A DNA stretch of 64,000 bases from Rebecca billardiae RCC1528. Taxonomy: Eukaryota > Protista > Haptophyta. Shown one piece after another: positions 1,515-29,797 of the stretch (positions are counted from its first letter, which is position 1; each line of letters begins with the position of its first letter). The stretch is taken from assembly GCA_965240325.2 (NCBI GenBank), contig OZ251252.1:62001-126000 (forward strand), read 5' to 3'. The notes under the pieces are model-generated. The model was not told the DNA's origin and made no database searches. It was given only the letters and a program-made list of their open reading frames with translations. A program made the translations under genes and the position numbers.

Positions 1515-4480
1515 CTGCAGGGATGGTGCCACGGCGGGCGGCGGCGGTCGACGCAGCTGTCAGCTCGGCGGTGCGCGCCCGAGGGGCCTAGGCGACGAAC
1601 GCGCCGAGCGCGGTGTGGCTGCTCGCTTCGCCCAGCGCGCGCGAGCCGCTGCCATCGGGCGCTGCTGCGCCCGCGCCCAGCCGGGGCAGCAGCAGCTGCG
1701 CTCGACTCCGCGCCGAGTGCGGCGGCAGCAGCGGGGATGGTGCCACGGCGGGCGGCGGCGGTCGCTGGAGCTGGCAGCTCGGTGGTCTGCGCCCGAGGAG
1801 CCTGGGCGCTGGGCGCACCGAGCGCGGTGACGCTGCTCGCCTCGCCCAACGCGCTGGAGCCGCTGCCACCGGGCGCCGCTGCGCCCGCGCCCAGCTTGGG
1901 CAGCAGCAGCTGCGCTCGACTCCGCGCCGAGTGCGGCGGCAGCAGCAGGGATGGTGACACGGCGGGCGGCGGCGGTCGCTGGAGCTGGCAGCTCGGTGGT
2001 GCGCGCCCGAGGAGCCTGGGCGCTGGGCGCACCGAGCGCGGTGACGCTGCTCGCCTCGCCCAACGCGCTGGAGCCGCTGCCATCGGGCGCTGCTGCGCCC
2101 GCGCCCAGCCGGGGCAGCAGCAGCTGCGCTCGACTCCGCGCCGAGTGCGGCGGCAGCAGCGGGGATGGTGCCACGGCGGGCGGCGGCGGTCGCTGGAGCT
2201 GGCAGCTCGGTGGTGTGCGCCCGAGGAGCCTGGGCGCTGGGCGCACCGAGCGCGGTGACGCTGCTCGCCTCGCCCAACGCGCTGGAGCCGCTGCCACCGG
2301 GCGCCGCTGCGCCCGCGCCCAGCTTGGGCAGCAGCAGCTGCGCTCGACTCCGCGCCGAGTGCGGCGGCAGCAGCAGGGATGGTGACACGGCGGGCGGCGG
2401 CGGTCGCTGGAGCTGGCAGCTCGGTGGTGCGCGCCCGTGGAGCCTGGGCGCTGGGCGCACCGAGCGCGGTGACGCTGCTCGCCTCGCCCAACGCGCTGGA
2501 GCCGCTGCCATCGGGCGCTGCGCTGCCCGCGCCCAGCTTGGGCAGCAGCAGCTGCGCTCGACTCCGCGCCGAGTGCGGCGGCAGCAGCAGGGATGGTGCC
2601 ACGGCGGGCGGCGGCGGTCGCTGGAGCTGGCAGCTCGGTGGTGTGCGCCCGAGGAGCCTGGGCGCTGGGCGCACCGAGCGCGGTGACGCTGCTCGCCTCG
2701 CCCAACGCGCTGGAGCCGCTGCCATCGGGCGCTGCGCTGCCCGCGCCCAGCTTGGGCAGCAGCAGCTGCGCTCGACTCCGCGCCGAGTGCGGCGGCAGCA
2801 GCAGGGATGGTGCCACGGCGGGCGGCGGCGGTCGCTGGAGCTGGCAGCTCGGTGGTGTGCGCCCGAGGAGCCTGGGCGCTGGGCGCACCGAGCGCGGTGA
2901 CGCTGCTCGCCTCGCCCAGCGCGCTCGAGCCGCTGCCACCGGGCGCGGCTGCGCCCGCGCCCAGCTTGGGCAGCAGCAGCTGCGCTCGACTCCGCGCCGA
3001 GTGCGGCGGCAGCAGCAGGGATGGTGCCACGGCGGGCGGCGGCGGTCGCTGGAGCTGGCAGCTCGGTGGTGCGCGCCCGAGGAGCCTGGGCGCTGGGCGC
3101 ACCGAGCGCGGTGACGCTGCTCGCCTCGCCCAGCGCGCTGGAGCCGCTGCCATCGGGCGCTGCTGCGCCCGCGCCCAGCCGGGGCAGCAGCAGCTGCGCT
3201 CGACTCCGCGCCGAGTGCGGCGGCAGCAGCAGGGATGGTGCCACGGCGGGCGGCGGGGGTCGCTGCAGCTGAAAGCTCGTTGGTGCCTGCCCGATGGGCC
3301 TGGGCGCTGGGCGCACCGAGCGCGGTGACGCTGCTCGCCTCGCCCAGCGCGCTCGAGCCGCTGCCACCGGGCGCCGCTGCGCCCGCGCCCAGCCGGGGCA
3401 GCAGCAGCTGCGCTCGACTCCGCGCCGCGTGCGGCGGCAGCAGCAGGGATGGTGCCACGGCGGGCGGCGGCGGTCGCTGGAGCTGGCAGCTCGGTGGTGC
3501 GCGCCCGAGGAGCCTGGGCGCTGGGCGCACCGAGCGCGGTGACGCTGCTCGCCTCGCCCAGCGCGCTCGAGCCGCTGCCACCGGGCGCTGCTGCGCCCGC
3601 GCCCAGCCGGGGCAGCAGCAGCTGCGCTCGACTCCGCGCCGCGTGCGGCGGCAGCAGCAGGGATGGTGCCACGGCGGGCGGCGGCGGTCGCTGCAGCTGA
3701 AAGCTCGTTGGTGCCTGCCCGATGGGCCTGGGCGCTGGGCGCACCGAGCGCGGTGACGCTGCTCGCCTCGCCCAGCGCGCTCGAGCCGCTGCCACCGGGC
3801 GCCGCTGCGCCCGCGCCCAGCCGGGGCAGCAGCAGCTGCGCTCGACTCCGCGCCGCGTGCGGCGGCAGCAGCAGGGATGGTGCCACGGCGGGCGGCGGCG
3901 GTCGCTGCAGCTGAAAGCTCGTTGGTGCCTGCCCGATGGGCCTGGGCGCTGGGCGCACCGAGCGCGGTGACGCTGCTCGCCTCGCCCAGCGCGCTCGAGC
4001 CGCTGTCACCAGGCGCTGCTGCGCCCGCGCCCAGCCGGGGCAGCTGCAGCTGCGCTCGACTCCGCGCCGAGTGCGGCGGCAGCAGCAGGGATGGTGCCAC
4101 GGCGGGCTGTGGCAGTCGCTGGAGCTGGCAGCTCGGTGGTGCGCGCCCGAGGAGCCTGGGCGCTGGGCGCACCGAGCGCGGTGACGCTGCTCGCCTCGCC
4201 CAGCGCGCTCGAGCCGCTGCCATCGGGCGCTGCTGCGCCCGCGCCCAGCTTGGGCAGCAGCAGCTGCGCTCGACTCCGCGCCGAGTGCGGCGGCAGCAGC
4301 AGGGATGGTGACACGGCGGGCGGCGGCGGTCGCTGCAGCTGGCAGCTCGGTGGTGCGCGCCCGAGGAGCCTGGGCGCTGGGCGCACCGAGCGCGGTGACG
4401 CTGCTCGCCTCGCCCAGCGCGCTGGTGAGTCGCTGCCACCCGGCGCTGCGCTGTCTGCGCCCAGCCGGAGCAGCTGCAGC
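1515..4480 (+). repeat. 214-bp tandem array, ~14 copies (left arm of the foldback)
   Basis: GGGATGGTG(C/A)CACGGCGGG recurs every 214 bp (ORF starts 1951, 2165, 2379 ... 4305). Confidence 0.95.
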
Positions 4481-22527: not shown

Positions 22528-25176
22528 ATGTGGCCGCTGAGCGTGTCGGGCGCCAACGTGCCCGAAGTGGTGCTCATCACCGACCCGGTACGCGCACGCG
22601 CGCTCGCCCCGCACGCCGCCATCACCCGCGGCGCGCGCGCCGGCGCGAGGCCGCCCGCTCGCGCGGCCTCACGGCGATGCGTCGCGCCGCGCCGCGCCGC
22701 GCGCCGGCACGGGCACAGGGGCCCGACCCGGACGATGTGAAGGTGCAGGTGAGTGAGCTCGCGCTCCTTGCGCGCGCCTCTTTGCCGCTGCGCGCTCGGC
22801 ACGTGCTTTGGCGCGCGCGCCCATGCCAGCGGCGCCTTGGGCGAGCGCCTCTGCGCGCGCGTTCAAACGCTCCACCGCGCCGCACACCGCGCGCCCGCCG
22901 CGCGCGGCGGTGCTCACACGCGTGCGCGTGCGCGTGCGTGTGCGGGCTCGCAGGCGTGCCCCCGCCGCTCGCACCACGCCAGCGGCCCCGTCCGCGCGCC
23001 GTCCGGCCGCGCGCGCGTGCCGCGTGTCGCGTGCCTGCGCGCGCGAGCGCCGATGCGGCCCCCGCGATGCGACGCACCGCCCCGTGCGCCCAGCCCGCCG
23101 GGGATGCCGCGTGCCGACGTGGCGCGCGCACAGCGCCACGCCAGCCGGGCCCAACCGCACGCCCCGCCCCGGCCCTCCCCGCGCAGGCGCTGCTCGTGAG
23201 CGCCATCCTTCACAAGCACGGCCGCATCGCCCTGCGCGCCGTGCTTGCCAACGGCGGCGGGGAGCCGCTGGCGCGCGCGCGGCTGGCGCGGTGCGTGCTG
23301 GACCACGTGGGCGAGACGCGCGTGCCGGTGGGCGTGGGCTCGGCGGGCACGGCCGCGCCCGCCCAGCCGCACGAGTTCGACCTCGCCGGCTACGACGCTG
23401 TCGACGACGCGCGCATTGAGCTGGACGGCGGCGCGCTGCTGCTGCGCGCGCTGCGGCGCGCGCGCGCCGGCTCGGTGACCGTGGTCGCCATCTCGAGCCT
23501 GCGCGACCTGGCGGACGCGGTGGAGGCGGCGCCCGAGCTGGTGCGCGCGAAGGTGCGCACGATCGGCGTGATGGGCGGCCTCCGGCGCGACGCGCGCGCG
23601 CCGCACGGCTGGGCGCCCGACTCCTCTCAGAACAACGCGTTTGACGAAACCGCGGCGGGCGCCGTGTACGCGTGGGCGATGGGCGCCGGCGTGCGGCTGG
23701 TCGTGCTCGGGCGGGAGGCGGTGCCGCTGCTGCCGATGCAGCTGGCGAAGAGCTTCGCGGACCGCACCGAGTGCCCGGTGCGCGCAGGCCGTGCCGCGTG
23801 CGGGGCCGCGCACCCAGCGCGCGCCTCCTGAGCGCGCGCTGCGCTGTCGCTGCGCTGCTGGCTGGCTGGTAGCGGCCAACCGTCATCCCCGCCCCTGCGC
23901 GCGCCCTGGCGGCGGTGTGCTGCGCGGCGGTGCCGCGCGCGCGTGCGCGCGCTGCCTGCGCCAGGTGATGCGCTACCTCGCGAGCGCGCAGTTCCGCGGC
24001 CTGCAGGGCCTGTGGCGCAAGCTGTGCGCGGGCCAGCTGCCGGCGCGCTGCACCAAGCAGTGGTACTTTGAGACCTTCTGCGGGCTCTCGCCCATGCAGT
24101 TTGGGTCGAGGCCGTGGCTGGCGCAGCTGGGCGCGGACGCGGACATCGCGGCGCACCTGAACGGATTCGTCAAGCCGTGCGCGCGCCGCGCGCGCGTGGG
24201 TGCTGGCGCCCGCGCGGCCCAATCGCGCCCGCGCGCGCGCCCGCGCGCGCGCGCCCACGCCCAGTGCGCTCGCGCCTCGCCCCCGCGCACGGCCGCCGCC
24301 GCCGCCGCCGCCGCGCGCGCGCCCGCGGCTGCCGCCGCCACCGCAGGTACGACGTGATCGCGCTGATGGCCGCGCTGCCGCTCACGCGCGGCCCCTTTGG
24401 CACCGCCTTCGAGCAGCCGCTCTCCGACGCGCCGCCCCCGGACCGCCCCCTGCCCGCCGCCCTCGACCACCCCGGCCGCGAGCCGCCGCCGCCGCCGCCG
24501 GCGGGCGGCGTCGTGGTCGTGAACGGCGTGCGGCACGTGCTGCTGCTCACGCGCGCGCACGCGCCGCCGCTCGCGCCCGTGCTCAAGCTGCTGCGGGACA
24601 CGTTCGCCGAGGTGGTGCTCGCCACGCGGACGGCGGGCGCGCCGCCCGCCGCCACCTCGCCCACCCGCCGCCGGCTGCGGGGCGCTTACGGCGCGGACGC
24701 GCTCGGCGGCGGCGGCGGCGGCGGCGGCTCGCCGCTGGGCGGCGCGCCCGAGCGGCTGCGCTCGGCCGGGCGCGGGCGTGGGCGTGGCGGCGAGGATGGC
24801 GGCGAGAAGGAGGGCGTGCCGCCGCGCGCGCCGACCGCCGCGTGCGCCGCCGCGGCCAACGGCTCGGGGTGCCGCCGCTCGGCCGCGGCAGACGCGCCGC
24901 CGCGCGCGCGGCCGCGCGCCGCCGCGGCCGCGGCCGCGACGGTGGCGCCTGCGCCGCTCTCGCGTCGGCTGGTGCTCGCGGCGGCGGCGGCGGCGCCGGG
25001 CGGCGGGCGGGCGGCGTGCGCGGCGCTCGCGCCCGCCGCGCCCGCGCCGTGCTCGCCGCGCCGCGCGCCCTCGCTGCCCTCCGCCGCCGTGTGCGCGCTG
25101 CCGCCGCCGCCGGCGCGCGCGCGCTCGGCGCGCGGCGCGCTGCAAAGTGCGGCCACTACTCCGCTGCTAGCGCACC

Positions 25177-25207
<31 letters not shown>

Positions 25208-25744
25208 TGCCGCGCGGCGGCGCGTGCCCGCGGCCGGGCGCGCGCGGCTGCCCCCGCCCGCGCGCGACCCCGCCGAGCCGCTCAGCCCGGACGCCACCGT
25301 CGCCATCCTCGAGCGCGCCCTTAGCCTTGCGCGCGGGCAGCGGCTGCGCGTGGCGTGGCCGATGCGCGCGGCCGCGGCCGCGCTCGCGGCCGGCGCGGCG
25401 GGCGCGGCGCTGGCGGAGGGCGCGCTGATCGGCGGCGGCGGCGGCGGCGGGGCGGGCGGCGGCGGCGCGTGGGCCGACGCGGCGCGCGCCGCGCGCGTGC
25501 ACGCCTACCTCTGCGTCGGCGCGGCCGCAGTCCCGCCGCTGCTGCTGAGCGTGCAGCCATCGGAGGCGGGCGCGGGCGCGGCGCGCGCGGCCGTGGCCGC
25601 GCTGGCGTGCGCGCTGCTCGCGCTCGGCGGGGCGCGTGGGCGGGACGCGGCGGTGCTCGTGGCGCGCGGCGCGCCCGCAGGCGCGATCGCGCCCGCCGCC
25701 GCGCACACCGCCGCCGCCCTCGCCGCCGCCGCGTGGCTTGCGCT

Positions 25745-25801
<57 letters not shown>

Positions 25802-28800
25802 GCGCGAGCGCGCGCCGCGCCCGCGGCGGCGCGCGAGCGCGCTGCTGCGCGCCGCGTGGCGCGGCTTTGGCGGCTGGGCGCTCGCGCACTTTGGTGCGCG
25901 CGCGCGGCGCGCGGCCCGATCCCCGCGCTCGCGCGCGCTCGCCTGCTCCCACACCGCGCGCCACCCGGCCGCGCCGGTCCGCTGCGGCCGCGCGCGCGCG
26001 CGCTCACGCGCCGCGCCGCGCCGCGCCGCCGCCGCCGCCGCCGCCGCCGCCTCGCGCGCGCGGCCGCAGCGGTGGAGCTGGCGGCGTGCGGCGCGCTGCT
26101 CGTGACGGGCGGCGCGCGTGAGCTGCCCGCCTGGCTCCCCGCCACGCGCTGCCTCGCCGCCGCGCTCGGCATGGCGCTCGGCGCCGCCGCCCTCTCGGCG
26201 CGCGCGCGCGGCGCCGTGCGCGCGTGGCTCTCACGGCCGGCGCGCGGCGCCGACACGGCCGCGGCCGCGATCGCTCCGCTGCTCGGCTTCGGCGCGGCGC
26301 ACGAGTACGAGCCGGCGGCGCTGGTGGCGGAGGGCGTGCGCTCGTTCGCCGGCGTGCCGCTCGACCTCCCCGCCCTCGTCCGCTTCCGCCGCCTCGGCGC
26401 CGCCGCGCGCGCCGCCCGGCGCTCCTCTGACGCCTCCACCGTCTCGGCAGCATGGCTGACGCAGCGGCTGGGCGGCGCCTCGTCCGCGGCGCTGCTCGCG
26501 CTCGGCGGCGGCGCCGCGCCGGCGGCGTCGCGCTCGGCGTCGGGGGCCTCGGGCGGGGCGGGCAGCGGGGCGGCGTGGGCGTGCGCCGCCGCCGCCGCCG
26601 CCGCCGCTGGCTGCGCCAACAGCACCGCGCCGCCGCCCACGCCGTCCGCGCGCGCCGCCGCCGGTGGCTCGGCGCTCGGCTCGGCCGCACCGTCCGGGCC
26701 GCCCTCGGGCCGTGCGAGCCCGGAGCGCAGCGTGAGCCCGTGCGCCACGCCGGAGGAGGCGCCAAGCCCGGAGCTCGAGCGGCCGGACGCGCGCGGCCGC
26801 GCTCTCGGCGCCGTCAGCTTTGCGCCGCCGCCCGCGCGTACGCTGCCCAGCCTGCTGCTCTGCTCGCTGCCGCGCGCGCGCGCGCCCTCGCCGCGCGCGC
26901 GCGCCGCCGCGGCCGAGCCGGGCGGCGGCGGCGCCGGCTGGCGGCAGCACCTGCCGCCAATCAGCCTGGCCGCGGTGGCGCGCGCCGCGCGCGGCAGCCG
27001 CGTGCCGCGCCCGTCCTCGTGCAGCGGCGGCGGCGGCGACGACGCGCAACGCGCAGAGGGCAGTGACGGCAGCCCGAGTCCGGACGGGGCAGCAGCAGCA
27101 GCAGCAGCCGAGGCCGCGGACGACGTGCACCGTGCAGAGGGCAGTGACGGCAGCCCGAGTCCGGACGGGGCAGCAGCAGCAGCAGCAGCCGAGGCCGCGG
27201 ACGACGTGCACCGTGCAGAGGGCAGTGACGGCAGCCCGAGTCCGGACGGGGCAGCAGCAGCAGCAGCAGCCGAGGCCGCGGACGACGTGCACCGTGCAGA
27301 GGGCAGTGACGGCAGCCCGAGTCCGGACGGGGCAGCAGCAGCAGCAGCAGCCGAGGCCGCGGACGACGTGCACCGTGCAGAGGGCAGTGACGGCAGCCCG
27401 AGTCCGGACGGGGCAGCAGCAGCAGCAGCAGCCGAGGCCGCGGACGCCGCTGCGGCTGAGCGCGCAGTCGCAGTGCCCGCCGCCGCCGCCGCCGCCGCCG
27501 CGCGCGGCGCGCGGCCGCGCGGCGCGGGCGCGGACGCGCCCACCACCAGCGGCCCCGTGAGCAGCGGCCCCACGAGCAGCCTCACGTGCAGCGGCCCCGC
27601 CACCAGCCTCACGAGCTCGCAGGCGTCCTCGCAGCGCACCTCCTGCCGGTACGAGCCGGACGCGTCCTGCCGCTGGTACCAGGGGCGAGAGGGAGACCCG
27701 GACACAGCCGCCTGCCCACTGGAGGGCGCCTGCCCGCACGGTTCGGGCTGCTGCGTTGGCTGCGGCTGCTGCGCGGGCGCGGGCTGCGCGCCGCCGCCCG
27801 TGCAGCGGTCGGTGCAGCCGTTGGGTGCGGCGTGCGCGGCCGCATGCGCCGCCGCGGCCGCGAGCGCGGCGGCCGAGGAGGCCGGCGGCGACCGTGGTGA
27901 CGGCGGCGGCGCGGCCGCGCAGACGCCGCCCTCGCCCTCGCTGGCGGGCGCGCGCGCGGCAGGCAAGCGCGCCGCCGCGGACGCCGCGCCCGCCGCGCGG
28001 CGCGCCGCTGCTGACGGCGACGACGACGACGACGGCGCGGCGGCGGGCGCGCGCGCGCTTGGCGGCGAGGCCACCGCCGACGCGGCAGTCGCCGACGGGG
28101 CCGGCGTCACCCTCGCCCCCGCCGCGAGCGCTGCCGCGCTGTGCCCGAGCGGCGGCGCCTCCGCCACCTCGTCCGCACCCTCGTCCCGCCGCGGCTCGTT
28201 CCGCGCCCTGGCGCCCGCGCACGCGGCGGGCGGGCGCGTGGGCGTGCTCAGACTGCCGCCGCCCGACTGTGCAGCCGGCTGCGGCGTCGGCGGTGGCGCC
28301 AACCCACAGCGGGGCGCGGAGGACGAGGCGGCGCCGCCCGACGCGCACCCCGCTGGCGGCGGTCCGGGCGCAGCCGGCGGTCCGGTAGACTACTTTGTGC
28401 TGCACGCCGCGTCGGAGGCGCCCGAGGCGCTGGCGGAGGCGCTAACCGGCTGGACCCGACGCTTCCACGCTGCGCACGGCCGCGCGCCCGTCGTCTGGCT
28501 GCGCGGCCTGTGCCTCGACCCGTCGCTCACGCCCCTCGACCGGCTGGCGCACCTGCCCGTGTACCTCGCGCGCTCCCGCCGGCTGCTCGTCCTCTGGGGC
28601 GAGGGCTTTGCGGACGAGCTCGCTGCGGTGCTCACGCTCGTGCTGTGGGGCGCGCTGGGCGGCGCGCGCGCGGACGTGGAAGTGGTGCCCGTGCTGCCAC
28701 CCGCCGTCCCCGCCACGCCCACGGGCGGCGGCGGCGCAGCAGCAGCCGCCGCCGCCGAGCGTGGCGGCGGCGGGCAGCCCGCGGGGCCGGACGCGGCCGC

Positions 28801-29164
28801 CCCGGCGTCCGCTGCCGCCGCGCGCGCCGCCATCGTCGCGTCGGTCGACACGTTCCACGTGATGTGGGCGCGGCACGCCGGCCACCCGGCGGAGAAGGAG
28901 CGGCTGGTGCACGCGGCCGCGCTCGCCACCGTGAGCCGCGTGAACGAGGCGGTGCGCGCGTACCTGCCCGCCGTGCAGCGCGCACTCGCCGAGCAGCCAG
29001 AAGCCGCCACCGCGCACGCGCACGCGCCGCCGAGCGCGGCCGACGGCGCGCACGCCGATGACGCGCCATGCACGCCGCCGCCGCCGGCTCCGCCCGCGGA
29101 GCGGCCGGCGCGCGCGGACGGCGCCAGTAGTGATGGACGCGTATCGGCGTCGGAAGACGGCTGA
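22528..29164 (+). CDS. Nucleoside hydrolase (IU-NH-like) domain + transmembrane region + C-terminal TIR-like domain; multi-exon
   Basis: Spliced VLITDP|GPDPDDVK, VVAISSLRD, IGVMGG, PDSSQNNAFD, KP|YD (NH-fold motifs); hydrophobic helices at ~25360-26220; C-terminal DYFVLHA...W...F...HGRAPVVWLRGLCLD...LPVYLARSRRLLVLWG. Start codon uncertain. Confidence 0.7.
27053..27447 (+). repeat. 81-bp coding tandem repeat, ~5 identical copies
   Basis: Encodes (AEGSDGSPSPDGAAAAAAAEAADDVHR)x~5 in frame. Confidence 0.95.
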
Positions 29165-29731
29165 TGCAGTCGTGATGAGCGTGTCCTCTGCTGAGCCGAG
29201 CAGCGCGGCTGCACGGGACGCCGCGGCGGCACTGCGGCGGACGCGGCGCGGTCCGGTGCGACGTAATGCTGCCGCATCATAGCAGTCGGACTTAGTCGAA
29301 TAGTCCGCGTCGGCCGTGACTTTATTATATATATATATATATCCTCATCCTCATCCTCATCCAGGCGCCCACGCGGGCGCACGGGGGCGACAGCCGCGGC
29401 TGCCGCTTGCCGGAGCTGCTCGCCGCTAGGTCGGCGGGCGGCGACATCGACTACGACCTCACCCTCATCCAAGTGCTCCGGAAGGCGCTCGGCCGCGGCG
29501 GCATCTGCCGTCGCCGCCGCGTGCCCCAGGCCGAGGCGGTGCTCCATCCCGGCCCCGCTCCCGTAGGGGGGCAGGGCTGCGGGTGGCGCACTGTCTGACC
29601 TGGACGGAAGGCGCGGACGCATTCTATGTAGTATGTGTCTGTTGCACTCTGAGCCTAATGACGCTTGTCCGATGCTGCCACGTCGTTAAATATATATATA
29701 TACTGACGCCTGCCCGTTGCATACCACGTCG

Positions 29732-29733
<2 letters not shown>

Positions 29734-29797
<64 letters not shown>
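29734..29797. repeat. (TA)n microsatellite
   Basis: Pure AT dinucleotide run. Confidence 0.95.

Follow-up and report, generated by a model that had tools for sequence, protein, structure and literature searches.

Does the stretch between 22528 and 29164 on the forward strand of the window encode one protein that joins a nucleoside-hydrolase fold, a membrane block and a TIR domain, and, if so, what would such a protein do? The window is the whole piece of DNA analysed, 64,000 nucleotides from the haptophyte Rebecca billardiae RCC1528 (contig OZ251252.1, positions 62,001 to 126,000). Positions are counted from its first letter, and all parts of the gene lie on the forward (+) strand. A preliminary description of the sequence had proposed this fusion in a single gene, and each element that it listed is indeed present at 22528–29164. 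On the evidence of homology, splice sites and codon-position composition, the stretch is best read as one six-exon gene. We consider it reasonably probable that its product is a multi-pass membrane protein with a XopQ-type hydrolase and a TIR domain that acts as a scaffold, this copy serving as a terminator or regulator of a signal.

The composition of the locus limits what can be used as evidence. Between 22.5 and 29.2 kb, G+C is 78–88%, and open reading frames (ORFs) of hundreds of codons are present in all six frames. At such a composition, open frames by themselves prove nothing, and hence the evidence for a gene has to come from homology, the consistency of splice sites and the G+C content of codon positions. 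A minus-strand ORF at 25321–28302 (993 residues) and other off-frame and antisense ORFs overlapping the gene, all rich in Arg, Ala and Pro, were rejected as artefacts of G+C content. They are long because stop codons are scarce here, and we do not regard them as overlapping genes.

We located the hydrolase pieces by translating the three forward frames and finding conserved peptides, and searches were run with single exons or with natural full-length relatives. The pieces are spread over several frames and are joined via introns. Five introns (131, 438, 187, 170 and 176 nt) are proposed, each of which fits the frame change required; the donors are GTACGC, GTGAGT and three times GTGCGC, and the acceptors are all CAG. 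Exon 1 (22528–22587) starts with the ATG at 22528, begins MWPLS..VVLITDP, contains the first β-strand (MWPLSVSGANVPEVVLITDP) and aligns with family N-termini. Its last codons give the first Asp-Pro of the metal-binding motif, next to the donor GTACGC, so that the motif (TDP/GPDPDD) is interrupted by the 131-nt intron 22588–22718. The acidic loop noted in the preliminary description is therefore real, though split. Exon 2 (22719–22748; acceptor CAG, donor GTGAGT) supplies the remainder of D-P-G-P-D-P-D-D as GPDPDDVKVQ and is matched by tblastn in the related sequences L003 and L001. Exon 3 (23187–23777) encodes the hydrolase core (..ANGGGEP..VMGGL..PDSSQNNAFD..), and exon 4 (23965–24176) continues the domain (VMRYLASAQFRGLQGLWRKLCAGQLPARCTKQWYFETFC..NGFVKP), with tblastn matches to L001–L003 at E-values of 1e-22 to 1e-24. 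G+C at third codon positions (GC3) is 0.96 in both of these exons. The hydrolase ends in exon 5 (24347–25893), in the stretch YDVIALMAALP.. with its conserved Asp; this exon also carries a low-complexity linker (A), the conserved pre-membrane helix DATVAILERAL and hydrophobic helices 1 to 4 or 5, and its donor, GTGCGC, is at 25894. Exon 6 (26070–29164; acceptor CAG at 26067–26069) holds the last hydrophobic helices, a conserved post-membrane motif, a second linker (B), the TIR-fold domain and the stop codon, TGA at 29162–29164.

The fifth intron (25894–26069) is placed by conservation on its two sides. Upstream, the family hidden Markov model (HMM) tracks frame 0 from ∼25255 to ∼25895, ending ..WALAHF; downstream, conserved frame-2 sequence begins with VELAACGALL and leads into the post-membrane motif. 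Frame 2 is open from 25355 to 29164, and the reading frame of exon 6 is unbroken from 26070. GC3 is 0.91–0.99 in the exons, and the proposed introns have no third-position peak. The predicted protein has up to 1844 residues, its excess over relatives lying in the low-complexity linkers. As a separate observation, three of the introns (22749–23186, 24177–24346 and 25894–26069) have a G+C content of 0.81–0.91, richer than the exons, and contain many simple repeats of the GC-dinucleotide or GCC type.

What kind of hydrolase is this? The nucleoside-hydrolase fold proposed for the N-terminus is borne out by exon 3, which scores 35.2 bits against Pfam IU_nuc_hydro (PF01156; cut-off 34.2), with full-length relatives reaching up to 56 bits. 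Exon 3, which is 51% identical to L003, matched only XopQ chains in a phmmer search of the PDB (E = 1e-7), and exon 4 gave a weak XopQ match (E = 0.044). A profile (A2) built from 13 relatives, with the window exons entered as separate rows, matched XopQ (4p5f, 4kl0 and 7jlu chain B) at E = 9e-40 over 305 positions, compared to E = 2e-10 and ∼175 positions for the best canonical nucleoside hydrolase. HopQ1-like proteins (HLPs) are defined by a modified calcium motif, DXXXDXDD instead of DXDXXXDD (PMC11685791). The motif here, D-P/G-P-D-P-D-D across exons 1 and 2, is DXXXDXDD and corresponds to TDPNKDPDD in XopQ; the canonical form is absent, as the position of its first Asp holds a hydrophobic residue (VVLI-T-D-P..). 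DXXXDXDD is carried by 12 of the 14 full-length relatives. The window hydrolase also retains the PD(S/T)-x-NN-x-D stretch, of which NN-x-D is the ribose-binding part, and the Asp of the C-terminal YD. By these sequence criteria, the N-terminal domain is a member of the HopQ1/XopQ-like (HLP) clan and not a canonical nucleoside hydrolase.

HopQ1-like proteins have already been listed in algae, haptophytes among them (PMC6019455); the words TIR and transmembrane do not appear in that paper. A hydrolase fragment of this type, 46% identical to L003, was also seen in three metagenome contigs (L005, at 3284–3877, L006 and L007). It is followed there by a same-strand ORF with a DnaJ domain, not by a membrane block and a TIR domain, which may represent another architecture within this algal clade of hydrolases.

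Crop pathogens inject XopQ and HopQ1 as type III effectors. The window domain resembles these proteins of Xanthomonas, Pseudomonas and Ralstonia in its fold, its DXXXDXDD motif, its PDT/S-x-NN-x-D stretch and its YD. It differs in its setting: the window gene is eukaryotic, chromosomal and intron-containing, and its product is not secreted or injected; and the hydrolase is fused to a six-helix block and a TIR domain, where the bacterial effectors are soluble proteins with a secretion region at the N-terminus. The window gene is an algal homologue, not a broken effector. XopQ homologues have been reported to hydrolyse the O-glycosidic ribose–ribose bond of 2'cADPR, a cyclic form of ADP-ribose (ADPR) made by TIR domains, yielding ADPR with near diffusion-limited efficiency, while being inactive on nucleosides, 3'cADPR, cADPR and pRib-AMP (bioRxiv 10.64898/2026.06.15.732069, a preprint of June 2026). 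The same preprint describes XopQ crystallised with bound ADPR (4p5f). The preliminary description had taken the domain for a different N-glycosidase: the nucleoside-hydrolase fold stands, but the assignment gives way to the HopQ1/XopQ type, whose characterised bacterial members are reported to cut an O-glycosidic bond.

The C-terminal domain was harder to recognize. A word-based protein search with the C-terminal piece gave no matches, and an exhaustive HMMER search then succeeded. An alignment of 56 sequences (A1) was used for AlphaFold2 and for a profile, and a MAFFT alignment for residue columns. With A1, AlphaFold2 modelled 28376–29002 at a mean predicted local distance difference test (pLDDT) score of 89.5 and a predicted template-modelling (pTM) score of 0.83; the single-sequence model was poor (pLDDT 47) and was left out of the fold search. 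Of the best 50 Foldseek matches in the PDB, nearly all are TIR domains, with modest E-values from 1.5e-3. VIA-align gave Z-scores of 10.9 for AbTir (118 residues aligned, root-mean-square deviation 3.0), 10.7 for RPP1 (140 residues, 3.6) and 10.7 for MyD88, and all 50 entries listed are TIR-domain proteins (Z 8.2–10.9), Thoeris ThsB among them. An unbiased comparison with 48,161 chains had TIR domains alone in its top 11 (Z 8.1–9.5); next came deoxyribosyltransferase, SEFIR and LOG folds, which are related. The closest ESM Atlas models belong to haptophyte clusters of the family itself, and TIR clusters of plant TNL and bacterial ThsB proteins come next. The model is thus a confident one, and in it the C-terminal domain has the TIR fold, as the preliminary description had supposed.

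Sequence signals of this fold are faint. Profile A1 aligns in register with the TIR domains of TLR15 and SIGIRR, below significance, at box 1 (D-x-[YF]-V-x-H-S in the family) and at the L-W-C-x-x-E of helix αC. TIR_2 is the sole recurrent Pfam family among the A1 members (6/56, below threshold, best E = 0.0022). The top two PDB matches of profile A1, designed helical repeats, were attributed to the composition of the Ala-rich C-terminal helices and dismissed as artefacts. Membership in the HET family (PF06985) was also rejected, as none of the 56 A1 members matches that model even at E ≤ 1. The motif pattern does look similar to that of HET domains (Y-x-x-S-H-x-W, W-x-D-x-x-C-x-x and a conserved acidic residue), and one neighbouring ESM Atlas cluster is auto-named 'Heterokaryon incompatibility domain'. 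HET has been reported to be a remote TIR homologue (PMC10890737). Unlike that fungal inducer of cell death, the window domain finds its structural matches among TIR domains proper. It shares the fold of enzymatic TIRs (RUN1/RPP1, AbTir, ThsB, SPARTA TIR-APAZ and SARM1) and of MyD88-type adaptors; it differs from the enzymatic ones in a longer helical C-terminal part, a Thr in place of the catalytic Glu and a score below the Pfam cut-off. A low-complexity insertion occupies approximately residues 107–145 of the piece, between the fourth strand (101–105) and the next helix.

Between the two domains lies the membrane block. Four hydrophobic segments are found at 25374–25766 (frame 0, exon 5) and one to two more from 26051 to ∼26200 (frame 2, exon 6), and the family-averaged hydropathy profile has six conserved hydrophobic blocks. 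The several hydrophobic helices described earlier thus come to about six by hydropathy. They are followed by the post-membrane motif LLGFGAAHEYEPAALVAEGVRSFAGVPLD (26279–26365), which is homologous to L003 and L004; the pattern LLGFG..EP..L....SF.P..LD is common to exon 6 of the window, L003, L004 and L001. With an even number of helices, the two soluble domains would share one side of the membrane. The N-terminus shows no apparent signal peptide, the first hydrolase strand starting at residue 13, and hence the shared side is probably the cytosol. The membrane block matched no known family: Pfam searches with the window and L003 sequences found none, and the ESM Atlas gave only unnamed haptophyte clusters. 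The long low-complexity linker that had been noted corresponds to two regions, linker A (24642–25253, exon 5) and linker B (26561–28375, exon 6), and Pfam searches with the linkers of the window and of L003 gave no matches. Linker B contains an in-frame tandem repeat (27038–27446; 81 bp × 5.0 copies, 99% identical) encoding DDVHRAEGSDGSPSPDGAAAAAAAEAA.

Is the fusion peculiar to this copy? The exhaustive HMMER search with the C-terminal piece returned 646 cluster representatives at E ≤ 1e-3, and full-length architecture was examined among the best 150 of these. Within that set, an N-terminal hydrolase and a C-terminal TIR-fold domain occur together in at least 14 full-length proteins, and ∼15 further representatives carry the hydrolase's C-terminal end. 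Two contigs of foreign assemblies, L003 (63% GC) and L004 (70% GC), each have, directly after the hydrolase exons, a single ORF (799 and 1212 codons, respectively) that runs from the hydrolase end through the hydrophobic block to the C-terminal domain. A protein derived from an MMETSP transcript (P0029, 1054 residues) carries the fusion, which places it on a single mRNA in a relative. NCBI gene models with the fusion come from Pavlovales sp. CCMP2436 (KAJ1636960.1) and Diacronema lutheri (KAG8460936.1 and KAG8464703.1, the latter named 'TIR domain-containing protein' by UniRef). Judged by these sequences, the hydrolase–membrane–TIR fusion is a conserved trait of the family. A search for the architecture in haptophytes and dinoflagellates had been suggested; the lineage is haptophyte (Pavlovophyceae), and no evidence from dinoflagellates was seen. 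No published description of the fusion was found in the literature searched, where the component parts are known. The proposal of an undescribed algal module thus needs narrowing: algal HopQ1-like proteins are known (PMC6019455), and what appears undescribed is the fusion of such a protein to a TIR domain.

Enzymatic TIRs depend on one glutamate, and the window copy has lost it. The family consensus L-W-C-x-x-E-L-Y-x-W reads L-A-A-V-L-T-L-V-L-W in the window. In the MAFFT alignment, the Glu column, which lines up with the E of the TLR15 WCQYE segment, holds Thr (residue 87 of the piece, LAAVL-T-LVLW), as the preliminary description had suspected from LAAVLTL. We take this column to be the catalytic Glu of enzymatic TIRs, which sits in helix αC and is needed for activity as a cyclase or as a hydrolase of nicotinamide adenine dinucleotide (NAD+). 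Other conserved TIR residues are altered as well: D43 to R (the Asp of V-W-x-D-x-L-C), W83 to A and C84 to A. The domain nevertheless ranks 33rd of 56 by leave-one-out HMM score, arguing against general decay. Across the family, Glu is kept in 117 of 156 representatives (75%), with another residue in 39, and it is present in 38 of the 56 aligned relatives. The term pseudo-TIR accordingly fits the window copy and not the family.

In most full-length representatives (10/14), hydrolase motif and TIR Glu are both present. The hydrolase motif is kept and Glu absent in 2/14, the class to which the window copy also belongs, and the motif is degenerate and Glu kept in another 2/14, which form one cluster. 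P0049 and P0172, from Logan contigs (1097 residues, full-length), have EAGGPDPDS instead of TDPGPDPDD with Glu retained and are a mirror image of the window copy.

In the immunity of bacteria, plants and animals, TIR domains produce signals derived from NAD. Given the HopQ1/XopQ-type identity of the N-terminal domain and the cleavage of 2'cADPR reported for XopQ, the hydrolase and TIR domains are probably functionally linked. A role in nucleotide signalling or defence, as originally suggested, is a reasonable reading. With DXXXDXDD, NN-x-D and the YD Asp retained, we infer from XopQ that the hydrolase would bind and cleave an ADP-ribose-derived signal made by TIR domains, such as 2'cADPR or a related isomer. 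About six transmembrane helices would separate it from the TIR domain, both probably facing the cytosol. In the majority form, a Glu-bearing TIR domain would make a cyclic ADPR-type signal from NAD+ and the hydrolase would linearise it, so that maker and breaker would form a self-limiting signalling unit at the membrane within one polypeptide. In the window copy, the TIR domain is most likely a non-catalytic assembly or scaffold domain that pairs with other TIRs. Such pairing would bring the intact hydrolase to the site of signal production, and the copy would act there as a terminator or regulator. More tentatively, and at odds that we would put clearly below even, haptophytes may possess an endogenous TIR second-messenger pathway in which TIR maker and XopQ-type O-glycosidase breaker reside in one membrane protein, with Glu-less copies as terminators or decoys.

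Other explanations share much of this evidence. One concerns the number of genes. Some 600 low-complexity codons lie between the last conserved motif and the TIR domain, and a membrane-anchored hydrolase might be followed by a separate TIR-like gene starting within 26500–28380. The frame is unbroken from 26070 to 29164, however, and the same order recurs in the single ORFs of L003 and L004, in the MMETSP-derived protein and in the NCBI gene models; conservation of the fusion makes this reading unlikely, and we rate it as very improbable. A second concerns function: the window copy, one paralogue among those of an expanded family, could be decaying or non-functional, kept open only by the rarity of stop codons at 80–88% G+C. 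Loss of the catalytic Glu and of three other conserved TIR residues would fit, as would the greatly expanded linkers, with their 99%-identical fivefold repeat of odd codon use, and the openness of all six frames. Against decay stand the mid-range score of the TIR domain (33/56), intact hydrolase motifs with 51–58% identity to relatives, five introns that all have canonical sites and correct phases, and a strong GC3 periodicity restricted to exons. Moreover, a quarter of the representatives also lack Glu, so that its loss recurs in the family and is no isolated lesion. We therefore regard decay as distinctly unlikely.

The hydrolase domain admits two further interpretations. Its Pfam match, PF01156, would suit an ordinary inosine-uridine nucleoside hydrolase of purine and pyrimidine salvage on a membrane anchor. 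This we find very improbable, as the motif is DXXXDXDD and not DXDXXXDD, the XopQ profile match is better by ∼30 orders of magnitude (305 versus ∼175 positions), and XopQ and HopQ1 do not hydrolyse nucleosides (bioRxiv 10.64898/2026.06.15.732069). Alternatively, the domain could be a sensor of ADPR or a cADPR isomer that gates a six-helix channel or transporter, with the TIR domain as upstream partner or oligomerisation module. The ADPR held in the XopQ crystal structure 4p5f is in keeping with ligand sensing, and the membrane block is conserved in helix number and in its flanking motifs; as general knowledge, TIR signals commonly act on membrane or channel-opening effectors. But all metal- and ribose-binding motifs of active XopQ enzymes are kept, and among known channel families none matches the membrane block; we consider a sensor unlikely.

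Several points weigh against the reading of a single gene for a hydrolase and scaffold TIR. The splice model and the single transcript rest on homology, and in DNA so rich in G+C a lack of stop codons says little about function. At up to 1844 residues, the predicted protein is far longer than its relatives (926–1283 residues), and further introns may therefore hide in the linkers. The repeat in linker B has atypical codon use (GC3 0.63; GCA, AGT and CGT codons), which points to a minisatellite that expanded recently or to an overlooked intron. The transmembrane count derives from crude hydropathy, so that topology is a prediction, and the window domain matches no Pfam TIR model (PF01582, PF13676 or PF08937) at the curated cut-off. 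As for mechanism, the 2'cADPR activity of XopQ rests on one preprint, and enzyme activity has been reported for bacterial XopQ homologues, so that its extension to the window protein would be by analogy.

The arrangement also differs from known TIR systems. Unlike in NLR, TLR and Thoeris proteins, the window TIR domain is tethered to the membrane behind a hydrolase. Phage and bacterial counter-defence enzymes cleave or sequester TIR signals (bioRxiv 10.64898/2026.06.15.732069), and the logic proposed here, degradation of a TIR signal, is the same. In contrast to those enzymes, the putative degrader here is the host's own gene product and is covalently linked to a TIR domain, which points to self-regulation rather than counter-defence. 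Covalent fusion is classic evidence that two activities, here those of the hydrolase and the TIR domain, share one pathway, and it points to an unstudied algal nucleotide-signalling system. The family offers natural variants for its dissection, with both sites intact, with the hydrolase site lost, or with the TIR Glu lost as in the window copy, and it bears on the origin of the XopQ/HopQ1 effectors. Were the endogenous pathway real, plant pathogens would have borrowed their effector XopQ from an ancient signal-off enzyme of eukaryotes or algae, and the fusion would independently support the enzyme–substrate link reported for XopQ.

Just downstream of the stop codon, at 29659–29797, a 45-bp direct repeat (2 copies) ends in a perfect (AT)31 microsatellite. 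G+C in this patch is 48%, compared to 70–88% in its surroundings.

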